Of a stretch of 64,000 nt of DNA, positions 8,886 to 36,783 are shown piece after piece. The notes beneath the pieces are model-generated. The model worked only from the letters and a program-made list of their open reading frames with translations, was not told the origin of the DNA and did no database searches. Position 1 is the first letter of the stretch, and each line of letters starts with the position of its first letter. The DNA is from Macrostomum lignano. Lineage: Eukaryota. The stretch spans positions 1 to 64,000 of the forward strand of contig NIVC01001117.1 in NCBI GenBank assembly GCA_002269645.1, given 5' to 3'. A program made the position numbers and the translations under genes.

Positions 8886-10493
8886 GCAGTGAGCATCTGA
8901 TCAGCTGATATTATTAATATTATATATTAATCAATTGTTAGTTTATGTAGATTATTGACGCCGTATTCTTAAATAAATTTATAAAATTATTCCTAAAACT
9001 GTCGTAAAAATACACAGCCTTGACATCTGTTTAAGTAGTTTTTCTGAAAATTGTTTTACTAAAGATAAGGCTTTGGCTATTTTAAATGTTTATTATTTAT
9101 TCGAAACGAGTTGCAGCGAGCCTGTCTTATCCTGCAGAATCGTTCGTTAAATTCACTGTACGCACATTTTTTAACTATTGACATGAAACTTTCCAAAATT
9201 ATGCTAAAATTATGCCAACATTTTAAAAATGTTTTGGCTATTAAATTTCATTTGTGGGGGGTTGTAAGTTACAACCATATTAATACAAATATCGATGTAA
9301 CTTTTATTCATTCATCATTTCAAAGTATCCAAAAATACCTTTTGAACAAGTATTTAATACATCGACTTATATTGGCCGAACAGGCTTTTTGCCAGAGCCA
9401 AACTTACTTACTCTACTACTACTAAAAAAGCTCACAACATAACATGGAACTTTGTGCAGAAGATTTTGACTTTTGAGTGATGTCTGACTTCAGGTAGCCT
9501 CTCAGACTGGAACACACTTGGTCTATATTGCTTTCTGGCGGAGCTGCTGTTCCTGTAGGCTTGTAAATTAGTTTAATAGCTCATTAAAATGCTCGCAATA
9601 CCTTTGTTTGGCATTGGGAGAAAGATTCCATGCTGTAGGCTAACTCGGCAATGTTGCAATTTGTTCAGATTCAGCAGCTCAGCAGCAGGTACAACCTCAG
9701 CAGCTGGGATTATAAATGGTTGTGCAGCTTGACGTCCTGCCATGACTTGCAAAATATTTTATATCTTAAGCAATTCTAGGTTGAGAAACCCCTCACTAAA
9801 ACTTGCCCAAAAGTGTCTATGGCCTTTTAGGATGACGTGGCATGACAAGTCAGCATAAATTTAAACCCTCTGTGACACATTGGTGTGTATTCAAAAGTAA
9901 AAATAATTATGCGAAACAAACTGCAACATTGCTGCTAATGCCTATATCATATTGGTATTCACCATCTCACATACTAGGCCTACCTGCATTTAAAAGCAAA
10001 AAATGGGCCTACTATGGATTAAATATTTGGTTTTATTTGTTTTTTTAAACATTTCATGTGTGCCACTATTAGCCTAGCTATCTAGACCTATGACTAGGCC
10101 TATTGCCTATTGCCTATAACACTACAAGTTATGCTATTATTATACTATGTATTAAGCCAAGTCCAGTACTAAGTGCTAGGCACAATTCTAATATTCAGAT
10201 ACTATTATTAGCATGTAATACTTTTTGTTTTAGGTATTAGAATATCAAAGCCAATACTTTTTGATAATATAGGAGTTTGTTAGGAACTTTCAAAATAATT
10301 TTTAATTTTTTTAATAGTCTAATAGGGCCTAGTCTAATACTAATATTAATAAAATTTTGTACATTAAAACTATATTGAATAGAATTTTAAAAATTGAACT
10401 GGACAAATAATAAAAAGCTATATACTGGCTTTAATAATATAATAATATGATAATATACAAAAGGTAAATATCATAATCAATATTATTTATATA

Positions 10494-10761
10494 CTCGGCA
10501 ACATTGAAAAGTCGCCACTCTATGCGCCAGTGAGCAATTTCTCTTTGACTTTTCTGAACTAAAAGATACGAGAAAACTGATTGGGGTAGCTTTTATCAGT
10601 TCAACCCTAGCACACCGCACTTGCCCAACTTCATTCCTCAACCCAAGTAGCTAAGTTGCGTCACTTGCAAAGATTTAGAGAATTTACCTACACTCTCAAA
10701 AGTGGCAACAGCTGACCACAGATGAAATCTTCTGTGATGGCGACTTTTTGATGTTGCTGAG
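10494..10761. mobile_element. MITE copy 1 (about 26-bp TIRs, TA flanks; Tc1/mariner-like)
   Basis: Left end ctcggcaacattgaaaagtcgccac and right end gcgactttttgatgttgctgag are inverted repeats, flanked by TA on both sides. Confidence 0.75.
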
Positions 10762-11701
10762 TATATATAGCTTTTTATTATTAGTCTACTTCAATTTCTA
10801 AAATTATGTTTAATATAATTTTAGAAAGTAGGTAAGGCCTATTTGTTATCATTCTAAGAAAGACTAAAAAGCTAAGTCTTATTTAGCAAAGCCTAATATA
10901 TTGCTATACTTGCTTATTTCTAAACAACAAAATAACTTCTTTGAATCATTAATCAAATTTGTAAAAAGTCAAAAAAGTCAAACTAATAAAATATAACTTT
11001 TATTTCATTATAATGCTCTTTTTATAACAGGGCACCTTAAGTTTTATTTTAGCTGAAATGGCATATTCCAAAGAGTATACTATATATAAACTCATTGTGT
11101 TGATACTTGATATTATTTAAGAAGCTTTCTATATGAATACGAATCTTGCTTAAACTTTTTAAATGATTACCATGTTAGAGTCATAGTATTGATAATTTGA
11201 AGTCCTAAATTAAGTTTGTCTTATATAGCTATTTATATATTGCTTTATGGTAATATAAGCATGCTAATAATCTCATTAGATTTATTGGTTTATAATACAG
11301 TTGTTCATACACAGACCTTTTTACATATAATGGTTTAAATCTAAAGTAAGTTTAAACATAAGTCTAAAAGAACTTAAACTTGATGAAAGAAACTGAAACT
11401 ATAGGGCCTAAGGGAAATTGGTATATGTCTTACAAAATGCAAACTGTCTGTAATTTTTTTATAAGATGCTATAAAATAATACTTACACTTGATCAATTGT
11501 GGTGCCATAATTTGTTTTAACTTCACTGCCACAGAAGAATTATTTTTGTTTTTTTACTTTGCCATTTTTGAGCCTTCAATTTTTTTAAGCAACAATATCT
11601 GAACTTTCTACTTCAAGTAGCGCAAATCCTTGTTGCCCTCCAGACTAGCACTAGTTAGCCGCCGCGCATCGTACAGTTGCACAGTCAGCAGGCGGGTCGC
11701 C

Positions 11702-13634
11702 ATGCAGCGCCCGTTCGGCGCGAGTGCCGCCGCCTCCCCAACCGCCGTCCAGGCGACTGCATCTTCGCCAGCTTCAACCGCGGTGGCTCCGCCGCCACCT
11801 CACCGTCAGCAGCAACATCAGGCGGTTGCGCGCATTCATCAGCACCCTGCCTCCGCCAACTTGACGACGACCACTCTGCCAGGCAGTCGGGCCGCCGTGT
11901 CTGCCGGCAGTCCGACCCGGGTTGCGCCGCAGGGCGAGGAGAGCCTCCAATCGGGCCTGGCCTCTCTCAGCCCGCCGGCAGAGCCGCGTCCCCAGCCGCC
12001 GCTGCTGTCTAAACTGCTGCCGAGGGCTTTCCCTCCCCTGACCCCGGCCGAGGACAAAGTGGTGGCCTCCGCTACTCACGTGTTCCTGTCCGAGTCCGTG
12101 CCAGTGCAGGGCCGGCGCGGCTCGCAGCAGTTGCCGCCAAAGAGTCCGAAAAGTCCCCGAAGTCCCCGGCCGCCAAAAGGGGCCGCAGCGGCAGCCGCAG
12201 CTCCCTACCAACCTGCCGTTGCTTCTCCTGTGGCTTCGCCGCAGCAGCAGCAACAGCAGCCGCAGCAGCATCAGCTCCTTGGACCGCCTGCTAGTCCCAC
12301 TACTGGTCATCAAAGTCTTCAGCATCAGCAGCATCACGACCAGCAGCAGCAGCAGCAGCAGCAGCATCACGACCACCAGCAGCAGCAGCAGCAGCATACT
12401 TACGCTGTACCCTACGCAGGCCAGTTTCTGCAGCAACAGCTTCAGCAGCAGCAACAGCAGCAGCTCGGCAGCCGTACCCGCTCCCATCCAAACCTGCTCA
12501 ACGATTATGTAAACGTTGTGGACGCCTCGCCAGATAAACCGCCGCTGCCTCATCAAGGCGGTCAGCCTCCGCTTCCGCCGCCTCTTCATCCGTCTCTCCA
12601 GCATCCGCACCATCATCAGCATCATCATCAGCACAATCAGCATCCGGACTCCTCAGGCGCGGCGCTGCACTCGCTCCGGCTTCAACTGGAGGCTGCGCAG
12701 TCGCGTGCCAGCCGAGTGGAGCTGTTGGAACGCGAGCTGTCCCGCTTGGCTGACGCGCACGAAGCTCTGGTTAAATCGGCCGAGCGGAGCGCCCGTCTCG
12801 AGACCGCGGTGCGGCGCCGGCTAGAACGAGAGTGCGCCCTGCTCAGACAGGAGAATGCTCAACTGAGAGACCGGCTGCTCAGCGCTGCCGAGTTTCATCA
12901 TCAGCAGCAGCATCATCAGCATCAGCCGGCTACTCAGGAGACTCTGCAACGATTGGAGGCTGAAAATCTGGCTGTGAGTTTGTTGAGTTTAAATCAATTA
13001 GTGTTAAAGAGGCCAATTATCAGTTGGTTAAAGAGGCCAATTAGCAGTCAGTTAAAGAGGCCACTTATCAGTCAGTTAAAAGGCCAATTAGCAGTCAGTT
13101 AAAGAGGCCAATTAATTATCAGTCAGTTAAAGAGGCCAATTATCAGTCAGTTAAAAAGGCCAATTAGCAGTCAGTTAAAGAGGCCAATTATCAGTCAGTT
13201 AAAGAGGCCAATTAGCAGTCAGTTAAAGAGGCCAATTATCAGTCAGTTAAAGAGGCCAATTATCAGTCAGTTAAAGAGGCCAATTATCAGTCAGTTAAAG
13301 AGGCCAATTATCAGTCAGTTAAAGAGGCCAATTATCAGTCAGTTAAAAAGGCCAATTAGCAGTCAGTTAAAGAGGCCAATTATCAGTCAGTTAAAGAGGC
13401 CAATTATCAGTCAGTTAAAGAGGCCAATTATCAGTCTGTTAAACGGGCCAATTAGCAGCTACTTTATTCAGGTATTCAAAAATTTGTATTTATATTCTTA
13501 GCATAATAATTGCATTATCACAGGTCTCATTTTAATGTCTAAACTCCTTAAATCCTTTTTAGCTCAAAGAGCAGCTGCTGAGCTCTCCAGCGCATCAACA
13601 GCAGCACAATCCCAACTGCAGTAAACAGAGCTGA
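11702..13634 (+). CDS. AMOT: Angiomotin-like coiled-coil protein (exons 11702-12973, 13563-13634), about 447 aa, apparently C-terminally truncated
   Basis: RVELLERELSRLADAHEALVKSAERSARLETAVRRRLERECALLRQENAQLRDRL aligns by eye to the angiomotin coiled coil ([50 protein letters not shown]). Gln/His/Pro-rich N-terminus, gccATG context at 11702, donor gtgagt at 12974, phase-0 acceptor at 13562, AATAAA near 13985. The second exon is less certain. Confidence 0.75.
13000..13460. repeat. 24-bp minisatellite (aaagaggccaattatcagtcagtt) in the AMOT-like intron
   Basis: Direct reading. Confidence 0.93.
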
Positions 13635-18328: not shown

Positions 18329-21300
18329 ATGAGATCGCCTTTGCTGCTGGTAATTGTATCGCTTCTTCTACTAGGAGAAGCCGCAGAAATTGCCCGGGCT
18401 CTGCGCCTCGCCGTGCTGGCTGAGCCGGGGCTGCTGCAGCCGGGTCTGGTGCAGCGAGTCGTCGACAGGCGGGTCAACCAGAACCCGCTGCTGTTCCCCA
18501 GCCTCGGCGAGTCCAACCCGCTCACCTGCCAGCTCGTGTCCGCTGACGACTCCGTCTTGGCTGTGCAACAGAGTGAGACATCTATGCAGAGCTTACCAGC
18601 AACAGCTGTTGTTTATCTATGGCCAGTCAGGGAATCCTAAAGACCTGGAAGTGACACTGCAATATTCAGGCCCTCCAGGCCGGTCCAACCCAGGCCGATA
18701 ACTTTTTTGGGAGAGAGGACAAAGAGGAAAAACATTTTCTTGCAGGGGCTAGTAAAGCGACTCGAAAAAGGGAGGAACGAAGGATAGAGAAGGGGTTGAG
18801 TGGACTGAGAGGATAGAGAGTGCAGAGAAAATCACTGTCCAAATAAAGACTGATTCAATATGAAAGGAGCGCATTGTACATGAGTGTACGAATTCTAAAC
18901 ATGATGACGCACTGTTGAATGCACACATAACTCTTATGCCCCTATCGAGCTGCATTTAAGTAAGCTTTCGTGTGTTCATAATCAAACTGAATATCCTCTC
19001 ATTTGCAAGCATCATAATGGGTTACAAGTGCTGTGTATTTGGCTGCAAATCTGGCTACGCGTCGCAGAAGACAGAAAATGTGAGCTATTATGCTTTTCCT
19101 AAAGACACCAACTTGCGACAGCGCTGGCTTCGCGCCATTCCAAATGCTGATTTAAATGCTTCCGAATTTCAACGCGTCTGCTCGAAGCATTTCACTGAAT
19201 CAGATTTCGTGAAGAGTTCATCGGATGCGAATCAACGCCGGAAGAAACGACGCTTTTCTGCATCTGATTCAAAGCTGCATCTGATTCGACTCAAAGACGA
19301 TGCAGTTCCATCTCAATTTGAAGGCTTGCCGAAATACCTGAGCAAGCCAATTACGCAGGTAAGAAGTCAAAATGCCACTTCCGCTGCGCGCTTCATGGGA
19401 GACCAAGTCCGCTTAGATGAGGAAATCAGCGACTTTTTTGGCTCCGACGAGTTGTGCGATTTCAGCGATTTGATTCAAAAGCTGGAACAAGCGACGATTC
19501 CCTCTGGATTCGTCAGAAGTAAGGAAGCAGATTCAGTCTCGTTTTACTTGATAACAAGATCTGACTCGATTTCAGCTCCTTGTCTGCTTGCCTCTATGAC
19601 AGTACTGCAGGACCTTACCTTCCAAGTCTTCATCTCTGGCCTTTCTTGCTCTGATAGCATGTTTAAACACCTGCTCAAAGATGACTCGCTACATGTGCGT
19701 CAGCTTTCGACTTTAGAAAACATGTTAGCCTTGATTAAGTCTTCGGCTACTGTTGCTGTTGACTCTCGCAATTCAAATGTGTCGTCTGCATTTGTTGAAG
19801 GCGTTTTAAAAGTCTACCTCGAATCTTTGAGTGATGATTCTGAACTGAGCAGCAATGTCAATTTCTTAGCTGAACAGTTCTCACTGATTCATCAAAAAGT
19901 ATCTGCTCGACGATATTCACCATCAACAACTGTGTTTGCGTACTTGATCTTTTCGACAAGTCGTGCCGCCTATAAGGCAATCCTAGAAAATGGTGCCCTC
20001 TGCCTACCATCTGTAAGAAGCCTTGTCAGGCTAAATGCTGTTCTTTCGAAGGAGCCTGGAGTGGTTGAGGAAATGTACCTGCAGTTGAGGACAGAGTCAC
20101 TGTCTAGCAGAGAGAAGCACGTTGTGCTCATTATTGATGAGGTCGCAACAGCTAAAAGAATCGAGTTCAATTGCGACTCTGCTTACGGCCTTGCGAGTGA
20201 CGGTAAAATGACCTCCTCAATTCTTGCCTTTCTAATCAAGTCCGTCGGCGCATCCTATCAGGATGTTGTCGGTCTATTTCCTGTTAACTGCTTGACCGCT
20301 CTGGACTTATGCAACATGGCCAAGGAAGTGATTGCGGCTGTCACAAAGAGTGGATTTGAAATTGTTGCATTGTCCTGTGACAACTCCTCTGTCAACCGAA
20401 AGTTTTACTCAATGTCAGCTGTACCTGAACATGGGCTGTCTATGCGACATCCATGTGACGATCAGAAAGAAATCTTCTTGCTGATGGACACTACTCACAA
20501 CATTAAAAATGTGTATAACAACTTTCAGAGACGAGGTGTATTTCACTGTCCAGCGTTCGACAATTGCAGCAACTTTGTGGCAAGGTTCAGTGATGTTGAG
20601 GCTATTTTTGAAATTGAAAGAGGTCAGTCGTCAAAGATTGCCTTCCGTCTGTCGGAGAAGGTTTTACGTCCTCTTAATGTCGAGAGAACTAGTGCTTCAC
20701 TGGCTGCAGCTGTGTTCGATGACACAACAGTTTCTGCACTCAGACTGTATTCAAGCACAAAGAGCACGGAGGTAGACACTTCAACGTTCAATAGCACAGC
20801 CAATTTCTTGTCCATGATCAGGAAGCTGTGGGCAATATTGAATGTTCGAACGCCATTCGCCGGTCAACAATTAAGAAGACCGGAAAGTGAGCCGCAAACT
20901 AATATGCAAGACTGGCAGCTCCAGTACCTTGCTGACTTTGTTGGCTTCCTAAAGAAGTGGCGAGCGGTATCAACAGGCGCAGATGGTCTGACAAACGAGA
21001 CATTTGGCAGCCTCATTCAAACATGCTCAGCCATTCCACTATTGTGTGCGAAACTTTTTTCTACTGGCCACTTTGACTACATTCTGCTGGGAAAGTTGTT
21101 GTCCGATCCTCTTGAAAGGCAGTTCGGAAAGTACAGGCAGATGTCCGGCGGATTGTATTTTATCAGTGCAAAGCAGGTCGTTCAGTCCGAGAATAAACTT
21201 AGAATGACTTCATTGCTTAAGCACTCGGAAATAGACTTGCTACGCTTAAAGAAGTCTTTCATGAAGGATGTTGAGCAGGAAGACACTGACGTTAGTCTAA

Positions 21301-24300
21301 GAGCAGCAGAAATCTTCGCTGATGTGTCAGATGAGCCATGCATGACCTTGCGCAGTAACGAGATGGGCTGTTTGAACGTGATGTTCTACATAGCAGGTTA
21401 CCTTTCAAAGTCCATCAGCAAGGGATGTGCTGATTGTAGAGAATTTTTGGTGAGCGAAGACAAGGTCCCTCCAATGGAAGTGACTCTCGACGATGCTCCT
21501 AATCGTGATTTCCTAGTTCGACAGTCATCACGGGGAGGACTGTGCTGTCCATCGGATTCTGCTTTCGTTCTCTGCATGACAGCGTTCAATTCGTTTGAGC
21601 TCATCAAGGGCTCCAAGCAGCTGCTGCAGAAGCTTCTTAGCTTTAAACCGCATCAAACATTCGCATCAGTCGTGATAGTAAAAACTCAAAACTGTGCAAA
21701 ATTTTCGGCTCGTCGCTTCCGCTGCTCAAATCATTCACTTAGACAAGTCATTCGGCAGTTTTCTTTCCGACTCCTAAACTGTTTTCTGAAAAACCTTTCT
21801 TCTGAAGCTAACCGCCCATCCGTTGTAGGCAAACGGAAATCGGGAGAACAGAAGAGAACTGAGGACTGCTCTCGCAAACTGGCCAAATTGAATCCTTAGT
21901 ACTCGTAATAGTATATTTTTATAAGCTTCATTGTTTTGACGATTCCGAGTTACTGCTAATTATTTTATTTACGAGTAAGCTCCCAGTTTATCCTGATGCA
22001 TAATTACTGCCTTTCTGATGTCCGATGATCCTTCAACCCTGGTAAGTTTGATTAAAACCCTTTTTATGTTTATATAGCCTATGGTTTACCAGTTTTATGC
22101 ATAATTGTTTCTTATAAAAGGCCTCATGAAACTTTCGTTTATTTCGTTACAATAAGGACTTTAAAAAATTCAGGGGATATGACTTTTCAGCGCTGTATCA
22201 TCGAGTTGATACTGAAAACCCTATAGAAAATGGCATGGGCTGCCTTGTTTGGTTAGGTAGGATCGGCCTGAGTTGGACCGCCCCCATTGGACAGTGTCAC
22301 TTCCAGGTCTTTAGGATTCCCTGGGCCAGTGCATCAATGCACTCTGTTTATCTATGGCCAGTGCATCAGTGCACTCTGTTTATCTATGGCCACTGCATCA
22401 GTGCACTCTGTTTATCTATGGCCAGTGCATCAGTGCACTCTGTTTATCTATGGCCAGTGCATCAGTGCACTCTGTTTATCTATGGCCACTGCATCAATGC
22501 ACTCTGTTTATCTATGGCCAGTGCATCAATGCACTCTGTTTATCTATGGCCAGTGCATCAGTGCACTCTGTTTATCTATGGCCACTGCATCAGTGCACTC
22601 TGTTTATCTATGGCCAGTGCATCAGTGCACTCTGTTTATCTATGGCCAGTGCATCAGTGCACTCTGTTTATCTATGGCCAGTGCATCAGTGCACTCTGTT
22701 TATCTATGGCCAGTGCATCAATGCACTCTGTTTATCTATGGCCAGTGAATTAGTGCATTCTGATTATCTATGGCCAGTGCATCAGTGCACTCTGTTTATC
22801 TATGGCCAGTGAATTAGTGCACTCTTTTTATCTATGGCCAGTGCATCAATGCACTCTAATACACTCTAGCTGTAAAACAATAACATTAAAATCCTATACT
22901 TAATTAATTACCTTGCAGTCTGTCGGTCCAGCGGATTCCACGGCCTCGTTACAGTCGGCAGCTGCTCTCTGGGCAGCTCGGTGCACCGGCTGGCCAAGTC
23001 CTTGCGAGTGCCCGCCATTTTTGTGCCAGCGGGGGAGCTGTGCCAGCTGGACACTGCAGAGTCTGGTATGTGAGCTGTGCCTGCTGGACACTGCAGAGTC
23101 TGGTATGTGAGCTGTGCCTGGTGCATGGACACTGCAGAGTCTGGTATGTGAGCTGTGCCTGCTGGACACTGCTGAGTCTGGTATGTGAGCTGTGCCAGCT
23201 GGACACTGCTGAGTCTGGTATGTGAGCTGTGCCTGCTGGACACTGCAGAGTCTGGTATGTGAGCTGTGCCTGCTGCATGGACACTGCTGAGTCTGGTATG
23301 TGAGCTGTGCCAGCTGGACACTGCTGAGTCTGGTATGTGAGCTGTGCCTGCTGGACACTGCTGAGTCTGGTATGTGAGCTGTGCTTGAGCTGTGCGTGAG
23401 CTGTGCGTGAGCTGTGCGTGAGCTGTGCGGGAGCTGTGCGTGAGCTGTGCGTGAGCTGTGCGTGAGCTGTGCGTGAGCTGTGCGTGAGCTGTGCGTGAGC
23501 TGTGCGTGAGCTGTGCGTGAGCTGTGCGTGAGCTGTGCGTGAGCTGTGCGTGAGCTGTGCGTGAGCTGTGCGTGAGCTGTGCGTGAGCTGTGCGTGAGCT
23601 GTGCGTGAGCTGTGCGTGAGCTGTGCGTGAGCTGTGCGTGAGCTGTGCGTGAGCTGTGCGTGAGCTGTGCGTGAGCTGTGCGTGAGCTGTGCGTGAGCTG
23701 TGCGTGAGCTGTGCGTGAGCTGTGCGTGAGCTGTGCGTGAGCTGTGCGTGAGCTGTGCGTGAGCTGTGCGTGAGCTGTGCGTGAGCTGTGCGTGAGCTGT
23801 GCGTGAGCTGTGCGTGAGCTGTGCGTGAGCTGTGCGTGAGCTGTGCGTGAGCTGTGCGTGAGCTGTGCGTGAGCTGTGCGTGAGCTGTGCGTGAGCTGTG
23901 CGTGAGCTGTGCGTGAGCTGTGCGTGAGCTGTGCGTGAGCTGTGCGTGAGCTGTGCGTGAGCTGTGCGTGAGCTGTGCGTGAGCTGTGCGTGAGCTGTGC
24001 GTGAGCTGTGCGTGAGCTGTGCGTGAGCTGTGCGTGAGCTGTGCGTGAGCTGTGCGTGAGCTGTGCGTGAGCTGTGCGTGAGCTGTGCGTGAGCTGTGCG
24101 TGAGCTGTGCGTGAGCTGTGCGTGAGCTGTGCGTGAGCTGTGCGTGAGCTGTGCGTGAGCTGTGCGTGAGCTGTGCGTGAGCTGTGCGTGAGCTGTGCGT
24201 GAGCTGTGCGTGAGCTGTGCGTGAGCTGTGCGTGAGCTGTGCGTGAGCTGTGCGTGAGCTGTGCGTGAGCTGTGCGTGAGCTGTGCGTGAGCTGTGCGTG

Positions 24301-27300
24301 AGCTGTGCGTGAGCTGTTGTCCAACTCATTCATCCTGCAGAGTTTGCTTTTGTTGGCGATGATCACCCTAGCAGACTTTTGTCTGCAGTCGTCGCCCTGC
24401 TGAAGTCGCACTCAGCCAGCCTCGTGTCCGTGTTCTATGACAGTCACCAGGGTATGCGGCTGCTCTAAAATTGCCTTTTGTTATAATAGACTTAAACCAT
24501 TGCTAATTGATACGTCGTAAACGACAAACTTCAGATGAGAGCCAGATGCAGTCGCTCCAGTCGCAGCTGTCAGCCTCAGGCATTGCGGCTGTCAGCTTTC
24601 AAACTGATGCTCCAACGTCAAACATATCGAGAATTCTGGCTGATTCCATTAAAAAGAAAATCCGATTCAATCTGATCTTTGCCAGGCCCGATGCTGTCTA
24701 CAGTCTGATAAGACAGGTGCTGTTTCACACTAGCTTTCAATTTCCAAATTTTTGGCCTTTATATTTTGATTGCGAAGCAAATTTTGCAGGCGGTTCAAGC
24801 GGAGGCAGTGCAGGCCCACTACTACTGGCTGGCTCTGGACGAGGGGCTGCGGCCGAACCAGCTGCTGCGGCTGCTGCCACCCAACGTGTCGGCCAACGTC
24901 ATGCTGGTCCGCGGCTCGAGTCACGGCCTGCTGGATCCGCAGCGGCTGCGGCTGAGCGGCGGCTGTCCCGACGCCCTGCGAGCCGTCATGGGCGACTCGT
25001 GCGACCCAGGAGCTGTCAGCGTGAGCATCTGAGCATTCTCATTGAGCCTTGGCATCTGAGCATTCTCATTGAGTCTTGGCATCTGAGCATTCTCATTGAG
25101 CCTTGGCATCTGAGCCAAGGACTTCTAGACTAACAGGACGTAAAACTCAAAAATCGTGCAATTTTTTGGAGGCCACGATTTCCTGGAAATAATACACTGC
25201 GAAGATAGGAAAAAATCAGTTTTTCGTCACAAAATCTGTGATTGTATTTGATCTGGGGCAGTGAAGACTACCATTCTTTTAATTTAACATGCACAACATG
25301 TTACTCTATTATATTTTCATATAGCTGTGTATTGAAGTTTTCATTTTCATGTTGTTTTTACTTCATTTCATAAGCCCAAAGTTGCAAATACTCACAAGTG
25401 GCATTAGCCAAATATCAAATTTAAGAAAAGAAAAGCTATTCAAATTTGTAATATAATATTTTTTTAGCCTTTAAAATAAAAATTATAAAAATACTAATCA
25501 ATGTTTTTTCTTATAGATTACCTAGTAAAAATGGTTAGGGCCTATTTTTGTGATTAAGTCTATTATTCTTAAATCTTAGTCTTAAATATAGGCTTGGCTT
25601 AAAAACTGATAATACAGCTTTCTCAAGCCTAGGTAAACAACAATATGAAACTATGTATTGGTAATCTATATATAATAAAAAAATCTGTCTAAATTTAATT
25701 ACTTATTAGGCTAGATAGTGCAGTGATAGGTCTAGTTCTAGTAGGCCTAGGAATTAGTATAGTTACTAAACCTACAATAATAGCTTAAGATTAAGAGTAC
25801 CTACATGCACAGTTTTTATTACAAATATACTTGATTCAAAAAAGGAACAGCACAAAAAGTTTGGCTAATGCCACTTGTGAGTATTTGCAACTTTGGGCTT
25901 ATGAAATGAAGTAAAAACAACATGAAAATGAAAACTTCAATACACAGCTATATGAAAATATAATAGAGTAACATGTTGTGCATGTTAAATTAAAAGAATG
26001 GTAGTCTTCACTGCCCCAGATCAAATACAATCACAGATTTTGTGACAAAAAACTGATTTTTTCCTATCTTCGCAGTGTATTTTTTCCAGGAAATCGTGGC
26101 CTCCAAAAAATTGCACGATTTTTGAGTTTTACGTCCTGTTAGTCTAGAAGTCCTTGATCTGAGCATTCTCATTGAGTCTTGGCATCTGAGCATTCTCATT
26201 GAGCCTTGGCATTCCGGCCATTGTGACCCGTGGTGGGCAAGCCATTGTGACCCGTGGTGGGCAAGCCATTGTGACCCGTGGTGGGCAAGCCATTGTGACC
26301 CGTGGTGGGCAAGCCATTGTGACCCCTCAGCCTCCGTAGCTGCAGATGCGCTCCCAATCGCACTCAGTGAACTCATTTTCTCATCGAACATTCCAGTCTG
26401 TTGAGCTGCGCACCATTGACGCAGTTCTGGCCATGACGAGGGCTGTCCACAGCGTCACAGGCGGCTACACCAGCTCGAGCTCCACCAACGCCAGCTGCAA
26501 CGGCGCCACTCGAGCATGGCCTGATGGCGCACTGGCAGCTCGCGCTCTCGCTAAGGTTGTGAGCGACTTGTCTGCATTCCAACACATTCACATCCGGCAT
26601 CACTGCTGGGAAACTTTTCATTGGAATTCCAGACCACGGACTTCAACACACTCGGCTCTCTGATTTCCTACAATGGCACCACGAGGCACTTCACCAGCTA
26701 CATCGAGGCGGTGTCCACCTTCCACGCCTTCTACACGAGTCCGCTGAGGTACATCGAGAGCGCCAGGTACCACCTCGACAACGCCTCGCTCAGCGTCTCG
26801 TTCGTCTACAAAGACAGGCGACTGGCTTTCCCGAACACCTTCGTGGACTTCAAGAACCGAACTCTCCGAGTCTGCGCTCCGGATGTAGGAGCTAAATTTC
26901 AACTGTCACACTGAAGTATTTGGATTTCATACTTGAAAACTATACCTATTATTGTCTTGAATTTCAGGTTCGTCCCTACGTAATCTACGACGAGAACACT
27001 TACGGAAAGGTCACCGGCCACGCTGAGGATGTGCTCAATATTGTGCGAGAAAATCTGAACTTCTCGTTAGTGACTCGAAAGCGTGAAAATTCTTAGTCAA
27101 TGCCACCAGTTTTAATGCAACTAACATATTGCACCGAGGGGGGGGGGGGCCGTAGCCCAGCGGTAGCGCAGATGCTCTGGTGTCCAGCGACCCAGGCTCG
27201 ATTCCAAGTGCAGTCGCATTAATTTGGGGCTGAATTGGAATTTCGGCTTGGCTCTGCTCGTGCAATTAACGGCTTTGAGAGCCAACCCCCCAAGGCACAG

Positions 27301-29924
27301 TGAAGTGTACATGCCTAACGATAAATAAAGTTAGGGCCGCTGTACACTCCTGTGTGAGTGTGTGCCTGCGTACGTATCCGCGCGCTTGTGTGCCTGCTCA
27401 GGGGAGTCGGCGGAATGGGCAGTAATGCCTCTCGCCGGTTGTGTGCCTATGTCGCTTAAAAAAACATATTGCACCAATATTGCAGAACCATCGTTCTGAA
27501 GCCGCCAGACGGGCAGTTCGGGGCGCCAATCAATGGCACGCAGCGCTTCTCCGGCTGCATTGGAGAGCTGCAGAATGGCGTGAGTTGCTTCTTGAAGATG
27601 GCTTAAGAGTCGCGACGGCTTCAAGTTGTTTGATAAATCTAGCTGTGAGTTTCAGTTTGTTCATCCGATTTCTCTTCCAGAAAGCAGACTTGGCAGTCGT
27701 TTTCGCTGTCACCAATCTGCGCTATGCCGTCGTGGACTACTTGGACGACTACCTGTACTCATCCAACAACATCCTGGTCCGCATACCGCCTCCTGCCAGC
27801 AAAATCTGGAACGTGTTCACGCCGATGACGCTGCAAGTTTGGCTGCTGCTGGCTGCCTCCATCTTCATCGTGCCCTTCATCATCTACCTGCTGGCCTTGT
27901 TCAGCCCCTTCTCCGTTTGGAACCTGAAACTGAGCTTCGCTTTCGCCGACGAGGTCTGGTACAAGGAATACCTGTGGTCCACCATCGGCAGTTTCTTGCA
28001 ACAGGGTCAGGACTTTTATCCATTCGCAATGTCGCCCAGAACCGTGATGGTGTTCTGGTGGCTGCTCACCGTTATTATATTTGGTGCATACACTGGAGAC
28101 CTGACTGCTCACCTGGCTACATCAGTCAGCAGTTTGACTATTAGGACTCTGGAAGACCTGGTGTCCATGCCTTACTACACGGCTTTAGTACCAAGGGGAA
28201 CCAACATTCACACGGCGATTGACATGGCTACGTCGGGACCGATGTTCCAGCTGAAGTCCATGACTGTGCTGGTGCAATCGCACGAGGACTGCGCTAGGAA
28301 GGTGAGGACTGTGCGCCCCGAATTTGGAATTCTTAGAACAGAAAGGTGCAACGAATCGGTGAAATTATGCGCTTTTAAATTTTCAACTTTCAGCTGCTGG
28401 CCTCAACCAATCCGTACACTGTGTGCATCGCGGATCAGAAGTCCAATCTGTACTTTGCTAACCAATTCTGCGAAGAAATGTACGTGGCTGACGAGTATTT
28501 TAACTTCTACTATCTGGCGTGGCCTGTGCCCAAGGATGCGTTCTATGCTGACGCCATGAACTTAATGTAAGCCGCTAATAAAGGGGATAAAGGGGATAAA
28601 ATGGGGATCTCATGTCAACTTAAGGCTCTGGAATGGAGCCCGAAGTTCAGCTCCGGACCAAACCGACTGCAATCGATAACTTGTCGGCCCAGACGACTAG
28701 AATCGCCGAGACATCCCATCCGGGTCCCTTCCTTGGGCTGACTGAAACTCCTCTTGCTGGCCGCTAGGCTGTTGCTCAGTAGGCTTCCGCTGCTGTGGTA
28801 AAGCATTTTCTCTGGCATAAAGTCTGGCAACAAGGCTGCGTGGAAGAGCGGAATCAACAAAGCGAAGGCTGGCACCAGACCTTCGATAGCTATCTTTGTG
28901 GTAAGCGTAGCAGCCCAGGAGTTTGAGCACTGCCATTGCATGACAATCGCAGCCTGCAGTCCTACTTCCAGCTTTTGCTGATGAGCAGTAGCCATGAAGA
29001 AGTTGCAATCATGGATCTCTAAAACCAAAGCGATTGTCCGCTGCTGTCACATACTCTAAGAATCACGCGGTAGGATTTCGAATTATGGCGCGAGAAAACA
29101 ACAGCTAGAAAAATCAAGACGGATGCCACCGACCGAATCGGTTGCTCCAGTTTTCTGGCTGCGTCTCTTGCCGAAACTTCCAACACTTGGATCCAGCGGG
29201 TTGACAGCAATCCATGCCCTTGCGTTGTTAGCAGAGGGGGGCACGCTTCAGATCACAGTTGAAGTGCAGCTGCTCAATTTCGTCCAGTTCGTTGGACAAG
29301 AGCACTCGGCGCATGAAATTCTCACCGAATTCGAACAACGATAGCCCTGTCCATGACGGTGGCAGCTGTTTAAATGATTCAAAACCTGGATGCGCCCGGT
29401 TGTACTTTGCCATCGAGGTCTCGATAACAACGTCTAATCGGCTGGGCTCACTGAAGCCGGCTGACGGCAGCCACTGATACGGTTTGTGCCTCTCGTTAAC
29501 ACATTAGTCCTGCTTAATGGCAGCAAAGCAGCACATAGCGGAACATAGTGGCACAGCGGATGTCTCGGCGATTCTAGTCGTCTGGGCCGACAAGTTATCG
29601 ATTGCAGTCGGTTTGGTCCGGAGCTGAACTTCGGGCTCCATTCTGGTGCTTAAGTTGACATCCCCTTTACCTTCTAGAATTCGTCGGGCTAAAGAGAACG
29701 GCCTCGTTGACATGCTCCGGTTGAAGTACTTCCCAACTAGCAGCTCAGAGTGCTCAAGTGCACAGGGAGGGATATCGGATGCTGAGCCAATTAACCTGGA
29801 GGGCATCGGCGGATCCTGCTTGGTGCCAGGAGTCCTGTACTTAATTGGACTGCTCATCCTGCTGCTTGAGCTCTTCTGGACCGCCTGTCTGAACAAGGAT
29901 CCGCTGCAATGCGTCCTGTTCTGA
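18329..29924 (+). CDS. Divergent ionotropic glutamate receptor / IR-like subunit, paralog A, 12 exons: 18329-18572, 22919-23065, 24341-24451, 24535-24716, 24790-25020, 26397-26558, 26633-26884, 26968-27065, 27486-27579, 27681-28301, 28394-28566, 29678-29924 (about 853 aa)
   Basis: Splice phases close without a stop (2562 nt). Signal peptide, ATD, S1 (PYVIY...G...NFS; GCIGELQNG; ADLAVVFAVTNLRYAVVDY), M1, pore LWSTIGSFLQQG, M3 GAYTGDLTAHL, S2, ENGLVDMLRLKYF and M4. The exon 6 acceptor could instead be 26339 or 26345. Confidence 0.9.
18628..22323 (+). mobile_element. Full-length P-superfamily (THAP9/Galileo-like) DNA transposon, 3696 bp, in intron 1 of iGluR A
   Basis: Perfect 32-bp TIRs (cagggaatcctaaagacctggaagtgacactg at 18628-18659; reverse complement at 22292-22323), subterminal inverted blocks, and 7-bp TSD ggccagt (18621-18627, 22324-22330). 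The empty site is present in paralog B near 38295-38320. Confidence 0.95.
19017..21899 (+). CDS. THAP-domain P-element-type transposase, intronless, about 960 aa from ATG 19017
   Basis: N-terminal THAP finger (CCVFGC...FP...W...CSKHF...AVP); catalytic motifs LIIDE, SCDNSSVN, DTTHNIKNVYNNF and SDPLERQFG; C-terminal CADC and RGGLCCPS; uninterrupted ORF. Confidence 0.95.
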   Translation: MGYKCCVFGCKSGYASQKTENVSYYAFPKDTNLRQRWLRAIPNADLNASEFQRVCSKHFTESDFVKSSSDANQRRKKRRFSASDSKLHLIRLKDDAVPSQFEGLPKYLSKPITQVRSQNATSAARFMGDQVRLDEEISDFFGSDELCDFSDLIQKLEQATIPSGFVRSKEADSVSFYLITRSDSISAPCLLASMTVLQDLTFQVFISGLSCSDSMFKHLLKDDSLHVRQLSTLENMLALIKSSATVAVDSRNSNVSSAFVEGVLKVYLESLSDDSELSSNVNFLAEQFSLIHQKVSARRYSPSTTVFAYLIFSTSRAAYKAILENGALCLPSVRSLVRLNAVLSKEPGVVEEMYLQLRTESLSSREKHVVLIIDEVATAKRIEFNCDSAYGLASDGKMTSSILAFLIKSVGASYQDVVGLFPVNCLTALDLCNMAKEVIAAVTKSGFEIVALSCDNSSVNRKFYSMSAVPEHGLSMRHPCDDQKEIFLLMDTTHNIKNVYNNFQRRGVFHCPAFDNCSNFVARFSDVEAIFEIERGQSSKIAFRLSEKVLRPLNVERTSASLAAAVFDDTTVSALRLYSSTKSTEVDTSTFNSTANFLSMIRKLWAILNVRTPFAGQQLRRPESEPQTNMQDWQLQYLADFVGFLKKWRAVSTGADGLTNETFGSLIQTCSAIPLLCAKLFSTGHFDYILLGKLLSDPLERQFGKYRQMSGGLYFISAKQVVQSENKLRMTSLLKHSEIDLLRLKKSFMKDVEQEDTDVSLRAAEIFADVSDEPCMTLRSNEMGCLNVMFYIAGYLSKSISKGCADCREFLVSEDKVPPMEVTLDDAPNRDFLVRQSSRGGLCCPSDSAFVLCMTAFNSFELIKGSKQLLQKLLSFKPHQTFASVVIVKTQNCAKFSARRFRCSNHSLRQVIRQFSFRLLNCFLKNLSSEANRPSVVGKRKSGEQKRTEDCSRKLAKLNP
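22324..22860. repeat. 32-bp minisatellite (tctatggccagtgcatcagtgcactctgttta) in iGluR A intron 1; target of the P element
   Basis: Direct reading; the same array lies in paralog B at 38295-38965. Confidence 0.95.
23030..24318. repeat. 37/42-bp exon-end/donor duplications followed by an 11-bp array (gtgagctgtgc)n
   Basis: Direct reading. Confidence 0.95.
25116..26156. mobile_element. Non-autonomous foldback DNA element, 1041 bp, about 297-bp TIRs, 8-bp TSD
   Basis: 25116-25412 is the near-perfect reverse complement of 25860-26156. Ends are CAAGG...CCTTG, the TSD atctgagc lies at 25108-25115 and 26157-26164, and the core is AT-rich and non-coding. Confidence 0.92.
26217..26325. repeat. 24-bp repeat (gccattgtgacccgtggtgggcaa); a 27-bp repeat split by the foldback element lies at 25021-25115 and 26157-26215
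   Basis: Direct reading. Confidence 0.9.
27136..27462 (+). mobile_element. tRNA-derived SINE copy 1 (3' end shorter than the other copies)
   Basis: Pol III A box tagcccagcgg, B box ggctcgattcc, short A tail, and 13-bp TSD aacatattgcacc (27123-27135, 27463-27475). Confidence 0.88.
28579..29669. mobile_element. Terminal-inverted-repeat element occupying almost all of iGluR A intron 11
   Basis: 86-bp perfect inverted repeat (28631-28716 and 29558-29643) with imperfect extension out to taaaggggat / atccccttta. TTAA at 28620-28623 and 29650-29653 is a possible TSD. No intact transposase; superfamily unresolved. Confidence 0.75.
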
Positions 29925-31841: not shown

Positions 31842-34800
31842 TGTTGTAGAAATTGAACAAGTCTGAGGGCCGTCAATTTAGCTAACAAGAAAAAATCAAC
31901 AATTAAGCGCTCACTGAGAGGCCTGCGAATATATTATATATTTAGCTCAGTCTCTCGCAACAACGTGGCAGGCACACAACTAACCCTAACACTCCCCCCT
32001 AATGATGCTTCATCATTACAGTATTTAACACTGATATTCGAAAAAGGAAACTCGCTATGAACTTAAAAGAAATTAAACGAAACGAATAGCAAAAAAACAA
32101 ACGAACAACAAAAAACGCTTCAACATTACAACAGACTTGATAACTAAAAATGTGACGCACCATCACTACCCTCCTGCCCTCCAGACAGCGACTATATATT
32201 TTTCATTGGTCCTACGCGTACATGAATATACCTTAAGAACAAATGTACGGTACAGCAGGGGAGGTGGGGCGGGGTGGCGTGATCGGCGTACGCGTTAATT
32301 ATTGATTGGATGGGTGGGGCAGACTGGAGGGTTGGGGCGGGGCAGGAGGGCGAGAAAGGGCACGATTGCACAACAAAAGCAGAAACAGAATTGGCGCCAA
32401 GGAGCAAAAATGTAAGCACCGTCACCAGCGTACTGTAAATTAGAGAATCCCAAATGTCGCGTTGAAAAGTTTACTCAGAGCACGAGCACGATATGCTGGG
32501 ATAAGAACTGAAGATTGAAACTAAGGAGAGCTAAAGACTGAGAAGTCAGATGTCAATAGTCTCTGTCAGCTTAAGAAAAGTCAATAACAGTTCATTCATT
32601 CACGGCTTCTAGCAAAATCAGGTTCTCAACCGGCCGGCGAATCAAGCATCTCCTGGGTCCGCGGTCTGGCCTTTGCACGACTCGAACTGTTGCCGATCTC
32701 ACTGCTCCGTCTCGTCCCGGATGCACCGCCTCGATAATGCCAGTACACCAGGTGAGCCTCGGTTGGCCAGCTTCGCCTTTCACCAGGACGATGTCACCGA
32801 TCGTTGCCTCTCGGATCACGCCGTGCTTAGGATTGAGCCGATGTTCACGCAGGCTGGTCAGATACTGCCGCTCCCAGCAGTCCCAGAAGGCGTGAAGTCT
32901 GGCGCGCATTCGCTTCAGCATTTTTGGCAACGGTAGCAGAAGATCCGGCGCGCAACTAGAAGTAGGTTCCGCTGTCAGCCGCTGCAACACCAGGAAGTGT
33001 GCCGGTGTCAGACCTTTGGGCTCGGCATCCACGTAGAGCAGAGGGCGACTGTTGAGCACCGCCTCCACCCCATGAGCAGTGTCAGCAGTTCGTCCAGTGT
33101 TAGACTTGCATTCAGAAGGGTTTTGCGCAGCGCCAGTTTGATGTCCTTAATCAGTCGCTCCTAGAAGCCTCCTTGCTAGGGTGCGCGTTCGGTGATGAAC
33201 TGCCAGGTAATCTTCCGAGCGGCGCAGAACTCCTGAACCTTTTGACTCTCCGATGCTTGTAATATCCGCGCGGCTTTGACGAATGTCTTAGCTTTATCGC
33301 TGATGAGACTAGGGATACCTCTCCTTGCACAGAATCTCCTTAGGGCTCTTAAGAAGGTCTCAGTTGTTAGATCTTTCACCAGTTCTAGATGAAGCGCTCG
33401 CGTTGCTGCGCAGGTAAACACTAAAATTTAGCCCTTCTCGACAGCAGTGTCTTCTCTCAGCTTGACCGGACCACAGTAGTCGAGCCCGCTCCACTCGAAT
33501 GATCTCATTGCTTTCACGCGAGATTCTGGCAACGCAGGAACTTGCTTCACAGCGAACGGGAGTCCCTGAAGACGCCTGCAGACGACGCATTTTCCAAGAA
33601 TTGCCTTCACTCGCTGCCTGCCACGGATCAGCCAAAACTTCTCTCGCAGTTTGCAAAGGGTGCTTGGAACTCCCCCGTGCAGAACTTTGCTGTGCGCGTC
33701 TCGGATGAGGAGAACTTCTAGATGAGTCTTGTTCGGGATGAGGATGGGGCAATCAGCAGCTATTCGGTGCCTCTCGAGGAAGAGATTAAGCTGCTTTGCG
33801 AGGTCCATAGATGCTGTCGACCTTTCAAAGTGAGCAATCTCAGCAGGGAAACTCCTTCGTTGTACATCTTTCAGCCAACGCTCCTCTGCTTCTGACACTT
33901 CTGCAGCTGTCAAAGTTCCTGCTCGCTCCTCCCCCGCTGCGGAAGTTCGAACTTGTAGGTTCTTGACAAATCGAAAGACGTAAGCCGTCACCCTAATGAG
34001 CTTGGTCCAGGAGGAGAAATCCGAATCTGGTATAACTCGATGCAGTCCCAAGTCCGGAACATCAGTGAGAAGGACGATTGATTTGTCTGCTGATGGCTTC
34101 TGCTCCTCGTCTGCCGTTGCTGAGGTTAGATTGAGAAAGGATTGGCCAGGCTAGCCTTCTGGAGGTCGAGTCAGCCAATCAGGACCATGCCACCAGCTGG
34201 TATCAGTCTTCAGCTTGTCGACCGAAGTGCCGCGAGATGCAACACTGGCAGGGTTCTCATTGCCTGGCACGTGTCGCCATGATTCCTCCGGAAGCAGCCC
34301 GCGGATCTCAGAGACTCGGTTGTGAACAAAAGAGCTTCCATGGCTTGTGCTGTCGGATCCAGTACAGAGTATCGGCACTATCTGTCCAGCAGAAAACTTG
34401 GCGGACTTGAGGATGTTGACTCAGGGCTGAAATCACTAGTCTGGCCAGTATCAGGGCAGCTAATAGTTCCAGCCGAGGAACCGACAGGGCCGATAGTGGA
34501 GCCACTCCGGCCTTCGCCGTCACCAGGATATAGCTGACAGAACCGTCGGTGTACTGAACTCGTAGGTAGAGACAAGCCGCGTAGCATTTTGCGGATGCGT
34601 CACAGAAGCCATGCAGCTGCATCTCTTGGACCACCCGTGTCGCGAAAAGCACCAGCCGCGGTACCTGGAATCGTGCTTTCAGCATGTCCTGCAGCCACTT
34701 CTGCCACAGCTGTTCAGTCGGCTCATCCAGCGGGCAATCCCAAGCAACTTTGTGAGCACAGAGCGTCTGAAACATTGTTTTCGGCTAAGTCAGTAGTGGA

Positions 34801-36783
34801 ACTAGGAAGCCGAGAGGATCATAGTCACGTGCCAGAAGCTGTAGCATGACTCGCTTGGATTGCGTAGCTCTGAGTAACTCCTCTGGTGGTGAGAACCGAA
34901 GCACGAACACGTCCGATCCGGTTTCCCAGTGCAACCCAAGGACCTTCGACAACACGCCCTCCTCACTCAATGAGGCGGAGGAGTAGCTCCCCTGGTCCTC
35001 CGTCATTCTGAGAGTCTCTACTGACAGGGCTGGAGCCAGAATGTCCTGGTCTGTAGCGCTAGCTCGAACTGCGGACAAAACCGCTTTACTGTTGGACTGC
35101 CGATGGCGTAGACTCATACCTGCCTGGCGGAAGACGTGACGGGATTTTTGGATGAGTTCCATGGCTTGCCGTTCGCTTGCACACCCAGAGATTAGATTGT
35201 CCACATAGATCTCTTTCGATACTTTGTCCATGAACTGCGCATCCTGGTCCTGATGAGATGCTAAATGATGTTGAATGACCGTCTCCAGAATCGCAGGTGA
35301 GCAGGTGAGTCCGAATACCAAAGCGGCGTAACGAAGAACAACGAGTGGCGATTCAGCTCGACTTGGATCCTGTGGCCAGAGAAACCGCAGTGCATCCCGA
35401 TCTTCTTCAGCAATGCGAATCTGAAGAAACGCCTCAATATCAACTGTAAGAGCGATCGGATGAAACCGGAATGCTTGAAGAAGACGAGGAATCTCGACTA
35501 ACGAACACGATCCAGTCTCCAGGCACTCATTCAAGGACGAGCTCCACCGATCTCGCTTAGCACTGGCATCGAAAACTACTCTGACCTTTGTCGACTCTGC
35601 TTCAGGACGAATCACTGCTCGGTGAGGCAAGTAGTGGACAAGATGGTGCGTGCCGTCGGGAACCTCCTCCACTATTCCAGCTGTAGCTGTAGAGAAGATG
35701 TAGGGTACCGTGTTAGCGCGCAATGTGAAGGGAGTGACGCCGTCAAGCTTACGAAGTTGTAACTCAACCTTTTCCGTTTGTAAGACCTTGGGCTCGGTGC
35801 CTCCAAATGTAGTCACTTCCATTGTCTCTGCCGATCACACAGAGTCCCATACGCTCAGCTACGCCCGACAGGATGAATGAACGGTTGCTCGCAGAGTCAA
35901 AGAGAATTCGAACCCGTGTTTCACTGCAGCCATCTGGTGAAATCAGTACAGCTCCCGCAGTACGAAGAACTACTGTCTGGGCCTTGGTGACCATCGCCAT
36001 AGTCTTTACTTCGTGACTCTTGACACTCTGCGCGGCCGACTGTTCGACTTTCTTCTTCTCTGAACCCGCCGTATCGAAGGTGCAATAGGCGTCTTGTCTG
36101 CCGGTCTCGGTGGCTGTTCCACTCGCGCAGCGCAGACTGGGATGATGCTTTAACCACAGATCTTATAAACACTAGATAGGCCACTCCAGCTAATTTATTC
36201 ACAACACGACTGTTTACTCTACTTTCTGCTTAGTAGTAGTAAAAGCATTTTAGCGTTATTTATATTTAAAAAACAAAAAAACAAAATGAATGCAATGCAG
36301 CAATTGTATTGATTTTAATTGCAAAAAGAAACTTATAATTATACTTTCTACAATTCAAAGCAACATAGTGAATGCTTTAGATTGCATTGAAGGCTATATT
36401 ATTGTAGTCAACTATTGTATATTTAGCAAATACGACCTATATCATATACTCTATATTCGTGTAGCAAAATAGAAAGATTTCTCGTTTTAATCAGCTCATC
36501 TGTTTGTGAAACTTTCGCAGCGTGCTGTCGAAGCACAGGGTCGCCAGTCGCCTTTGTTCAGAGGCAGCATTCAGCACGGCTTAAGAGATGAAAAAAACTG
36601 GCAAATCCCCCTTCGAATCCCCCTTAATCAACAATTAAGCGCTCACTGAGAGGCCTGCGAATATATTATATATTTAGCTCAGTCTCTCGCAACAACCACC
36701 CCACCATGCGTACAGAGGAGAGGGGACGCTAAGCGTACATACAAACCAGAGGGTGCTAGGCAGGCACACAACTAACCCTAACA
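31842..36783 (-). mobile_element. Decayed Bel/Pao LTR retrotransposon
   Basis: 3' LTR at 31842-31991 (TG...CA) with polypurine tract aggggggag adjacent; partial 5' LTR at about 36626-36783; agtta flanks; internal pol fragments in Bel/Pao order PR-RT-RH-IN. Confidence 0.92.
32592..36120 (-). pseudogene. Frameshifted, internally deleted Bel/Pao pol polyprotein; gag almost absent
   Basis: Protease ILFDSASNRSFI; RT YLPHRAV...VRVVFDAS...FGLTCSPAIL...YVDNL; RNase H LHGFCDAS...PRLELLAA...WTDS; WRHVPG.ENPA; integrase zinc finger H..LH...C..C, GLDYCGP, FTCAATRALHLE, RRGIPS and LNSRPL; split over several frames. Confidence 0.92.

Follow-up and report, generated by a model that had tools for sequence, protein, structure and literature searches.

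This study concerns a P-type transposable element in a 64,000-nucleotide stretch of the flatworm genome of Macrostomum lignano (GenBank assembly GCA_002269645.1, contig NIVC01001117.1, positions 1 to 64,000; hereafter the window). The element occupies positions 18628-22323 (3,696 bp), has a G+C content of 44% against 48% for the window as a whole, and lies in the same orientation as its host gene, with some 55 bp separating its left end from the presumed upstream GT donor at 18573 (a splice site read by eye). The host is an ionotropic-glutamate-receptor-like gene, paralog A, whose Lig_chan domain is encoded at 27441-28556; a tandem paralog B starts near 38040. An initial annotation, made from the DNA letters only, had described an apparently intact and recently inserted member of the P superfamily. 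Our analysis bears this out through a second copy that is 99.9% identical, a profile alignment and predicted fold that match Drosophila P transposase, and an invariant DDE triad.

Structure of the element and its insertion site

The element is bounded by terminal inverted repeats (TIRs) of 32 nt, the left reading CAGGGAATCCTAAAGACCTGGAAGTGACACTG and the right its exact reverse complement, as the initial annotation had proposed; no further match with up to three mismatches occurs elsewhere in the 64-kb window (0 expected). Internal to each TIR is a 22-nt subterminal inverted repeat with the consensus GGC(C/G)GGTCCAAC(C/T)CAGGCCGAT, the two copies of which are 91% complementary. These are separated from their TIRs by 18 bp on the left and 8 bp on the right, the right spacer being shorter by 10 bp, and the alignment of the left and right ends of the element stops beyond the TIR and the subterminal repeat. 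By its position the left subterminal repeat is a candidate internal transposase-binding or enhancer site. Between the ends runs a single open reading frame (ORF) of 960 amino acids (aa), from an ATG at 19017 to a stop codon at 21897-21899, with zero internal stops; the unbroken, intronless frame of about 960 aa with a THAP finger was thus read correctly from the outset.

The 7-bp direct repeat GGCCAGT abuts both ends of the element, a match of seven bases out of seven with a chance of about 6e-5, and no shift of the element boundaries yields an 8-bp repeat. The corresponding site in paralog B is unoccupied: positions 38296-38320 read TTTATCTATGGCCAGTGCATCAATG and hold one GGCCAGT only, and when the flanks of the element are joined and one copy of the 7-mer is removed, the result matches paralog B (from 38262 onward) base for base across some 52 nt surrounding the site. 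The target-site duplication (TSD) of 7 bp and the empty site in the paralog, both part of the initial annotation, are therefore confirmed. The element is inserted at the first repeat of a 32-bp minisatellite (22324-22857), and GGCCAGT is part of the repeat unit; the window has 36 occurrences of this 7-mer. The tandem doublet GGCCAGTGGCCAGT, however, is absent from the window, including the minisatellite units of both paralogs, and since it is never found the TSD does not originate in the register of the minisatellite.

The empty site also provides a relative date for the insertion. Identity between the two paralogs is 96.3% for exon 1 and 94.5% in the best alignment across the minisatellite region, with values from 87.6% to 99.5% further downstream. 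Near the insertion site they diverge by 4-8%, as against 0.085% between the two copies of the element described below, which makes the insertion far younger than most of the divergence between the paralogs. The insertion postdates the duplication of the host gene. The initial annotation had placed it after the last homogenisation of intron 1 between the paralogs; the data fit this order of events, but what they establish is an insertion after the duplication.

Domain organization and fold of the transposase

The ORF product matches three Pfam families, THAP (E=3.8e-17), TNP-like RNaseH_N (E=4.7e-12) and TNP-like GBD (GTP-binding domain; E=1e-5). Among solved structures the Drosophila P transposase (6p5a/6pe2) is the sole non-THAP entry matched by sequence, and the match to 6p5a improves from E=1.4e-12 for a single-sequence phmmer search to E=2.1e-39 for a small family profile. 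In the profile alignment, where the chain numbering of 6p5a is that of the Drosophila protein, the FDE, SD..N and D..E..FG motifs of the window protein fall in register with D230, D303, D528 and E531. Residues D374, D455 and E700 align with D230, D303 and E531, the experimentally defined catalytic triad of the Drosophila enzyme (PMC8230255), and D697 aligns with D528. Conservation was assessed in an alignment of the window protein with 35 full-length relatives (36 sequences), in which C5, C10, C55, H58, D374, E375, D455, N460, D491, D697 and E700 are invariant.

An AlphaFold2 model built on the same 36-sequence alignment has a predicted local distance difference test score (pLDDT) of 82 and a predicted template-modelling (TM) score (pTM) of 0.66, and supersedes an earlier run on six sequences (pLDDT 59.5). 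The model places D374 on beta1, D455 after beta4, D491 and H494 after beta5, and E700 on the helix that follows the helical insertion. A Foldseek comparison of the model with 6p5a chain A gives E=4e-22, a target-normalised TM score of 0.85 and a root-mean-square deviation of 3.4 A, while the next-best folds are those of Hermes, with TM scores of 0.27-0.31. The element and its protein combine the features that characterize the P superfamily, namely a THAP finger, a DDE and D(2)H core, the helical insertion and fold, and short TIRs with subterminal repeats and a 7-bp TSD.

In the Drosophila enzyme GTP is held by eight residues, D528, K385, K400, V401, S409, F443, D444 and N447 (PMC7776569), and the same positions in the window protein are occupied, in that order, by D697, R544, S559, A560, D568, W605, A606 and N609. 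The partial conservation of these contacts suggests that the cofactor requirement of the window transposase may differ from that of Drosophila P. The non-conserved residues are common to the whole clade of relatives, which has hundreds of full-length members, and so give no sign of decay.

A second copy of the element and its left end

The closest protein in the databases is PAA94070.1 (P0001), annotated as 'hypothetical protein BOX15_Mlig022091g1' of Macrostomum lignano, which has 860 aa and, compared with residues 1-860 of the window ORF, shows a single substitution, Q627L. Its gene belongs to a second copy of the element, at 9737-13307 of the locus NIVC01000016.1:12143-34725 (L001), inside an intron of an adhesion-type G-protein-coupled receptor gene and in the same orientation as that gene. 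The element is the only sequence that this locus shares with the window; the two insertions are therefore independent. The second copy is flanked on both sides by its own 7-bp duplication, GTCCAGC, in non-repetitive DNA. It differs from the window copy at three of 3,530 collinear bases (0.085%; 99.9% identity), the differences being Q627L, a change of GAG to TAG at codon 861 (E861stop) and one base in the 3' non-coding part. The stop at codon 861 accounts for the 860-aa annotation; no database record was found of the exact 960-aa product of the window copy. With two insertions that are 99.9% identical, each with a 7-bp TSD of its own, the family has transposed very recently.

The two TSDs, GGCCAGT at 18621-18627 and GTCCAGC at L001 9730-9736, agree at five of seven positions (chance about 0.013). 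Both resemble the target motifs GGCCAGAC and GTCCGGAC published for Drosophila P (PMC2577343), which may reflect a conserved target preference, a lead drawn from two sites.

The left end of the second copy is defective in an informative way. It retains the first 17 nt of the TIR, continues with a 24-nt filler, TCCTATCCTAAAGGGAATCCTAAA, made of two partial copies of TIR positions 7-15 and 2-14, and resumes at the equivalent of window position 18794, so that 149 bp (18645-18793) comprising the remainder of the left TIR and the left subterminal repeat are lost. Drosophila P transposase cleaves 17 nt inside each TIR (PMC7776569), and for both P and zebrafish Pdre2 there are reports of cleavage at a single end, accompanied by small terminal deletions (PMC10983969). 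We infer from this single case that the element was cut at its left end only, resected on the side of the element and rejoined with templated filler. If this reading is right, the transposase has acted in vivo and the long stagger of 17 nt is conserved. The GenBank annotation of the M. lignano assembly draws on transcripts derived from RNA sequencing only, from which those overlapping annotated repeats were removed (PMC5730564). Survival of a gene model on the second copy through this filter indirectly suggests that the family is transcribed and that the copy lay outside the authors' repeat annotation.

Relatives of the transposase

An exhaustive HMMER search returned 7,115 cluster representatives at E<=1e-3, 505 of them at E<=1e-30. 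A large number of these have lengths of 900-950 aa and can be aligned with the window protein over their full extent, at 30-38% identity. They include an unnamed clade of THAP/P-like proteins of about 930-950 aa, from invertebrates and metagenomes, which share the invariant residues of the window protein and whose named members include KAG1651616.1 of the sea spider Nymphon striatum and QQP35180.1 of the copepod Caligus rogercresseyi. Identity to the window protein outside M. lignano reaches at most 38%, which sets the element apart as what appears to be a new, separate family within a superfamily that is itself well known. A profile search of a word-indexed protein database added no new or named relatives, and an exact search with the TIR in metagenome contigs gave no match. 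Our literature searches found no description of P-like elements in Macrostomum or Platyhelminthes, nor of the relatives in the 930-950-aa clade; a 2025 paper on M. lignano transposons covers long terminal repeat (LTR) elements only, and the genome paper gives 3% DNA transposons and 13% tandem repeats, with no detail on families (PMC5730564).

In M. lignano, a 65%-identical protein (P0002, UniProt A0A1I8IVA6), for whose locus no record was found, is embedded in a chimeric gene model of 1,173 aa. Its alignment to the window protein breaks off near residue 600 and resumes near residue 935; judged by this alignment, it represents a copy with an internal deletion that belongs to a second P-like lineage of the species, an older one. 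A 35%-identical relative on a metagenome contig (JGI 3300005984, L004 2223-4591) carries an internal deletion; its TIRs measure 34 bp and start with CACGG, and its subterminal repeats of 18 nt have spacers of 24 bp on the left and 13 bp on the right, the same asymmetry of a long left and a short right spacer as in the window element. No TSD is visible on that contig, where the 7-8 bp flanking either side are unmatched and hence uninformative on TSD length. On the contigs L002 and L003 of a 34%-identical relative (P0003) no convincing TIRs were found, probably because these contigs are too short.

Interpretation and alternative explanations

Taken together, we are highly confident that the window holds a full-length, autonomous-type cut-and-paste transposon of the P superfamily (P/THAP9-like), recently moved, with a 7-bp staggered target cut and competent to encode its transposase. 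The window copy has no visible defect, and on that account we take it to be coding-competent and, probably, still open to mobilisation. Homology with the Drosophila enzyme suggests the following course of events. The THAP domain would bind sites inside the ends of the element and a multimer of the transposase would pair the two unequal ends. The DDE site would then cleave each end with a long stagger and join the 3' ends to the target 7 bp apart, and repair of the gaps would yield the 7-bp duplication.

Several observations weigh against this interpretation or limit its reach. The initial annotation had credited the protein with all catalytic motifs. It does have the DDE triad and the D(2)H motif, but only two of the eight GTP contacts are identical (D697 and N609) and a further two conservative (R544 and W605). 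The residue opposite D444, which is essential in the Drosophila enzyme (PMC8230255), is Ala606, at a position that varies across the clade. The Pfam match to the GBD family (PF21788) scores 26.4 bits, barely over its cut-off of 24.8 bits, and the S-V-K-L-A motif conserved in the clade reads S-A-S-L-A in the window protein. Two copies were reached, one of them defective; the three differences between them could include assembly errors, the 17-nt footprint is a single case, and the likeness between the TSDs comes from a sample of two.

One alternative is that this is a very young, intact-looking copy that no longer moves, either because the family is silenced, for example by piRNAs, or because the transposase is inactive, its ORF remaining open for lack of time to decay. 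This deserves serious consideration, although we think it the less probable state of affairs. In its favor are the small number of copies found, one of the two being broken, the absence of the window ORF from the record as an annotated product, and the unconserved GTP contacts together with the departure from S-V-K-L-A. Against it, the TIRs are perfect and all clade-invariant residues are present, the copies differ by just 0.085%, the repaired cut at the left end of the sister copy implies recent action of the transposase, that copy carries a transcript-derived gene model, and the unconserved GTP residues are shared across the clade and hence are not decay. A bolder proposal takes the opposite direction: that the element is active today in laboratory M. 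lignano and performs a P-type reaction with a 17-nt stagger in the absence of a canonical GTP pocket (D444 replaced by Ala and K400 by Ser), its transposase being naturally independent of GTP or differently regulated. We regard this as unlikely on the sequence evidence at hand. Were it true, flatworms would have their first native DNA transposon of demonstrable mobility, one that could be used for insertional mutagenesis or as a vector in those flatworms from which it is missing.

The origin and the very nature of the element invite other explanations. The family could have entered M. lignano recently by horizontal transfer instead of being an old resident, a scenario that is compatible with our preferred interpretation. 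In favor of it are the near-identity and apparently small number of the copies, the passage of the second copy's gene model through the repeat filter, suggesting a gap in the authors' repeat annotation, and the nearest relatives outside the species, which at 34-38% identity are scattered over arthropods and contigs of metagenome and run assemblies (JGI, Logan). Yet the internally deleted, 65%-identical P0002 suggests long residence of the wider lineage in the species, no donor-like sequence was found, and the G+C content of the element is close to that of the window; we consider such an arrival improbable. It is harder still to explain the 7-bp TSD and the empty site as artefacts of the 32-bp minisatellite or of misassembly. 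The insertion does lie at the first unit of an array that contains GGCCAGT, and the published assembly is redundant and rich in repeats (PMC5730564), but the doubled 7-mer is missing from all other minisatellite units of both paralogs, the reconstructed empty site equals paralog B over about 52 nt, and a TSD of 7 bp also flanks the independent copy, which lies in non-repetitive DNA, leaving very little room for this account. A domesticated host gene of the THAP9 type would find precedent in the vertebrates (PMC8230255), and the second copy is annotated plainly as a protein-coding gene; perfect TIRs, subterminal repeats and TSDs, together with the presence of the element within introns of other genes at two loci unrelated to each other, and its absence from the paralogous site, refute this explanation to the point that we give it practically no weight.

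Features of the locus

The coordinates of the element, its parts and its target are collected in Table 1.

Table 1. Positions in the window of the P-type element, its coding and terminal features, and the flanking host sequence.
Feature	Position	Strand	Basis or remark
Host exon 1 with signal peptide, ionotropic-glutamate-receptor-like gene, paralog A	18329-18572	+	96.3% identical to 38049-38290; Lig_chan downstream
Left TSD copy, GGCCAGT	18621-18627	.	Identical to 22324-22330; single at paralogous empty site
Left 32-bp TIR, CAGGGAATCCTAAAGACCTGGAAGTGACACTG	18628-18659	+	100% complementary to right TIR; unique in window
Stretch deleted in second copy	18645-18793	+	Comparison with the copy on NIVC01000016.1
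5' non-coding part of element, putative promoter and 5' untranslated region	18660-19016	+	Sequence
Left subterminal inverted repeat, 22 nt	18678-18699	+	91% complementary to 22262-22283
Transposase gene, intronless single ORF, 960 aa (stop included)	19017-21899	+	ORF, Pfam, alignments, model
THAP C2CH zinc-finger DNA-binding domain, aa 5-101, ligands C5, C10, C55, H58	19029-19319	+	PF05485, E=3.8e-17; ligands invariant
RNase H-like core, N-terminal half, aa 347-464	20055-20408	+	PF21787; alignment to 6p5a
Catalytic D374 on beta1 (codon)	20136-20138	+	Opposite D230 of Drosophila enzyme; invariant
Catalytic D455 directly after beta4 (codon)	20379-20381	+	Opposite D303 of Drosophila enzyme; invariant
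D(2)H motif D491/H494, then helical insertion domain homologous to the P GTP-binding domain, aa 491-616	20487-20864	+	PF21788, 26.4 bits
DPLE motif on helix alpha4: D697 (= D528) and third catalytic residue E700 (= E531)	21105-21116	+	Alignment, model
3' non-coding part; putative poly(A) signals ATTAAA at 22051 and AATAAG at 22151	21900-22291	+	Sequence
Right subterminal inverted repeat, 22 nt	22262-22283	-	8 bp inside TIR
Right 32-bp TIR	22292-22323	-	Complementarity to left TIR
Right TSD copy, GGCCAGT, also opening bases of 32-bp minisatellite 22324-22857	22324-22330	.	Sequence
Unoccupied target site in tandem paralog, single GGCCAGT	38305-38311	.	Alignment with element flanks

The paralogs themselves have a mosaic relationship. 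Aligned over 18346-29924 and 38049-44715, they are 99.5% identical at 26469-26887 and 87-96% identical elsewhere, which suggests patchy gene conversion; the 99.5% block hints at it, and the data can be explained without it. A 19-bp stretch, cagagcttaccagcaacag, at 18587-18605 is present in paralog A and not in paralog B; it lies 22 bp upstream of the insertion site and is unrelated to the sequence of the element. Between the paralogs, on the minus strand at 32592-35822, ORF fragments with reverse transcriptase, integrase zinc-binding and DUF5641 matches are the broken pol region of an LTR retrotransposon. The density of minisatellites in the window is extraordinary, with 68 rows of Tandem Repeats Finder (TRF) output, many arrays of 0.4-1.7 kb and periods of 11-74 bp, in addition to long (TAGT)n, (AGTT)n, (GACT)n and (GACA)n tracts; this density is consistent with the genome-wide share of tandem repeats noted above. 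Other host ORFs are found at 3546-4169 (+), 5735-7564 (-), with a weak rhodopsin-type seven-transmembrane match at 6974-7561, and 11630-13102 (+), which is rich in Gln and His.

Significance

Few elements of the P superfamily are proven active: P itself in Drosophila and, in assays, zebrafish zfTHAP9/Pdre2 and human THAP9. With a perfect copy, a 99.9%-identical sister and the footprint of a cut and its repair, the M. lignano element is a good candidate for another. Its host is a model animal for regeneration with established embryo injection and transgenesis. The element offers a natural test of how far the P mechanism is conserved outside insects and vertebrates, in particular its stagger of 17 nt, its use of GTP as cofactor and its unequally spaced ends. 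In M. lignano lines it could also be used as a marker for genome instability that is still going on. The initial annotation saw in it a candidate transgenesis tool for the host, an idea that we treat as speculation. In M. lignano piggyBac works (PMC8717057) and Minos failed; an endogenous source of transposase would destabilise vectors in this species, and as a mutagenesis or vector system the element would be better suited to flatworms that lack it.

Comparison with known systems

P-like elements with TIRs and TSDs of 7-8 bp are known from many animal phyla, and the window element shares features with each of the better-characterized systems. With Drosophila P it has in common an N-terminal THAP domain, DDE and D(2)H residues in register, a helical insertion between beta5 and alpha4 in a fold matched at a TM score of 0.85, TIRs of nearly equal length (31 bp in P and 32 bp in the window element), subterminal inverted repeats and 5'-CA termini. 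The unequal end spacers of 18 and 8 bp resemble the 21 and 9 bp spacing of the transposase-binding sites in P (PMC7776569), the two ends differing in each case by about one helical turn, and the footprint in the sister copy fits a P-type stagger. There are differences as well. Drosophila P has 8-bp TSDs and a spliced gene, whereas in Galileo and 1360 the TSDs are 7 bp long and the gene lacks introns (PMC3698922), as the initial annotation had correctly stated for P and for the TSDs of Galileo, and the ancestor of the superfamily was probably intronless (PMC3698922). The window element has a TSD of 7 instead of 8 bp and no introns where P has three. Its protein is 960 aa long compared with 751 aa, with a long C-terminal extension, shares about 19% identity in the structural alignment, and has not conserved half of the GTP-contact residues, D444 among them. 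The Tnp_P_element helix-turn-helix domain (PF12017) finds no match in the window protein even at E<=10; together with the 7-bp TSD and the single ORF, this rules out membership of the canonical P-element family.

In its 7-bp TSD and intronless gene the element agrees with the published descriptions of 1360 (Hoppel/ProtoP) and Galileo (PMC3698922). The TIRs of Galileo are very long, internally repetitive and Foldback-like (PMC3688188); the ends of the window element cannot be aligned beyond the 32-bp TIR and 22-nt subterminal repeat, and membership of Galileo is ruled out.

Zebrafish Pdre2/zfTHAP9 and human THAP9 have long (about 900 aa) THAP9-type proteins with the same domain order and DDE triad (PMC8230255, PMC10983969). 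Human THAP9 differs from the window element in being a single-copy domesticated gene that has lost its TIRs and TSDs (PMC8230255). Pdre2 is itself an element with TIRs, subterminal repeats and 5'-CA ends, like the one described here; it has multiple internally deleted copies, and differs in its 13-bp TIRs and 8-bp TSDs. The Pdre2 transposase is active in excision assays (PMC10983969).

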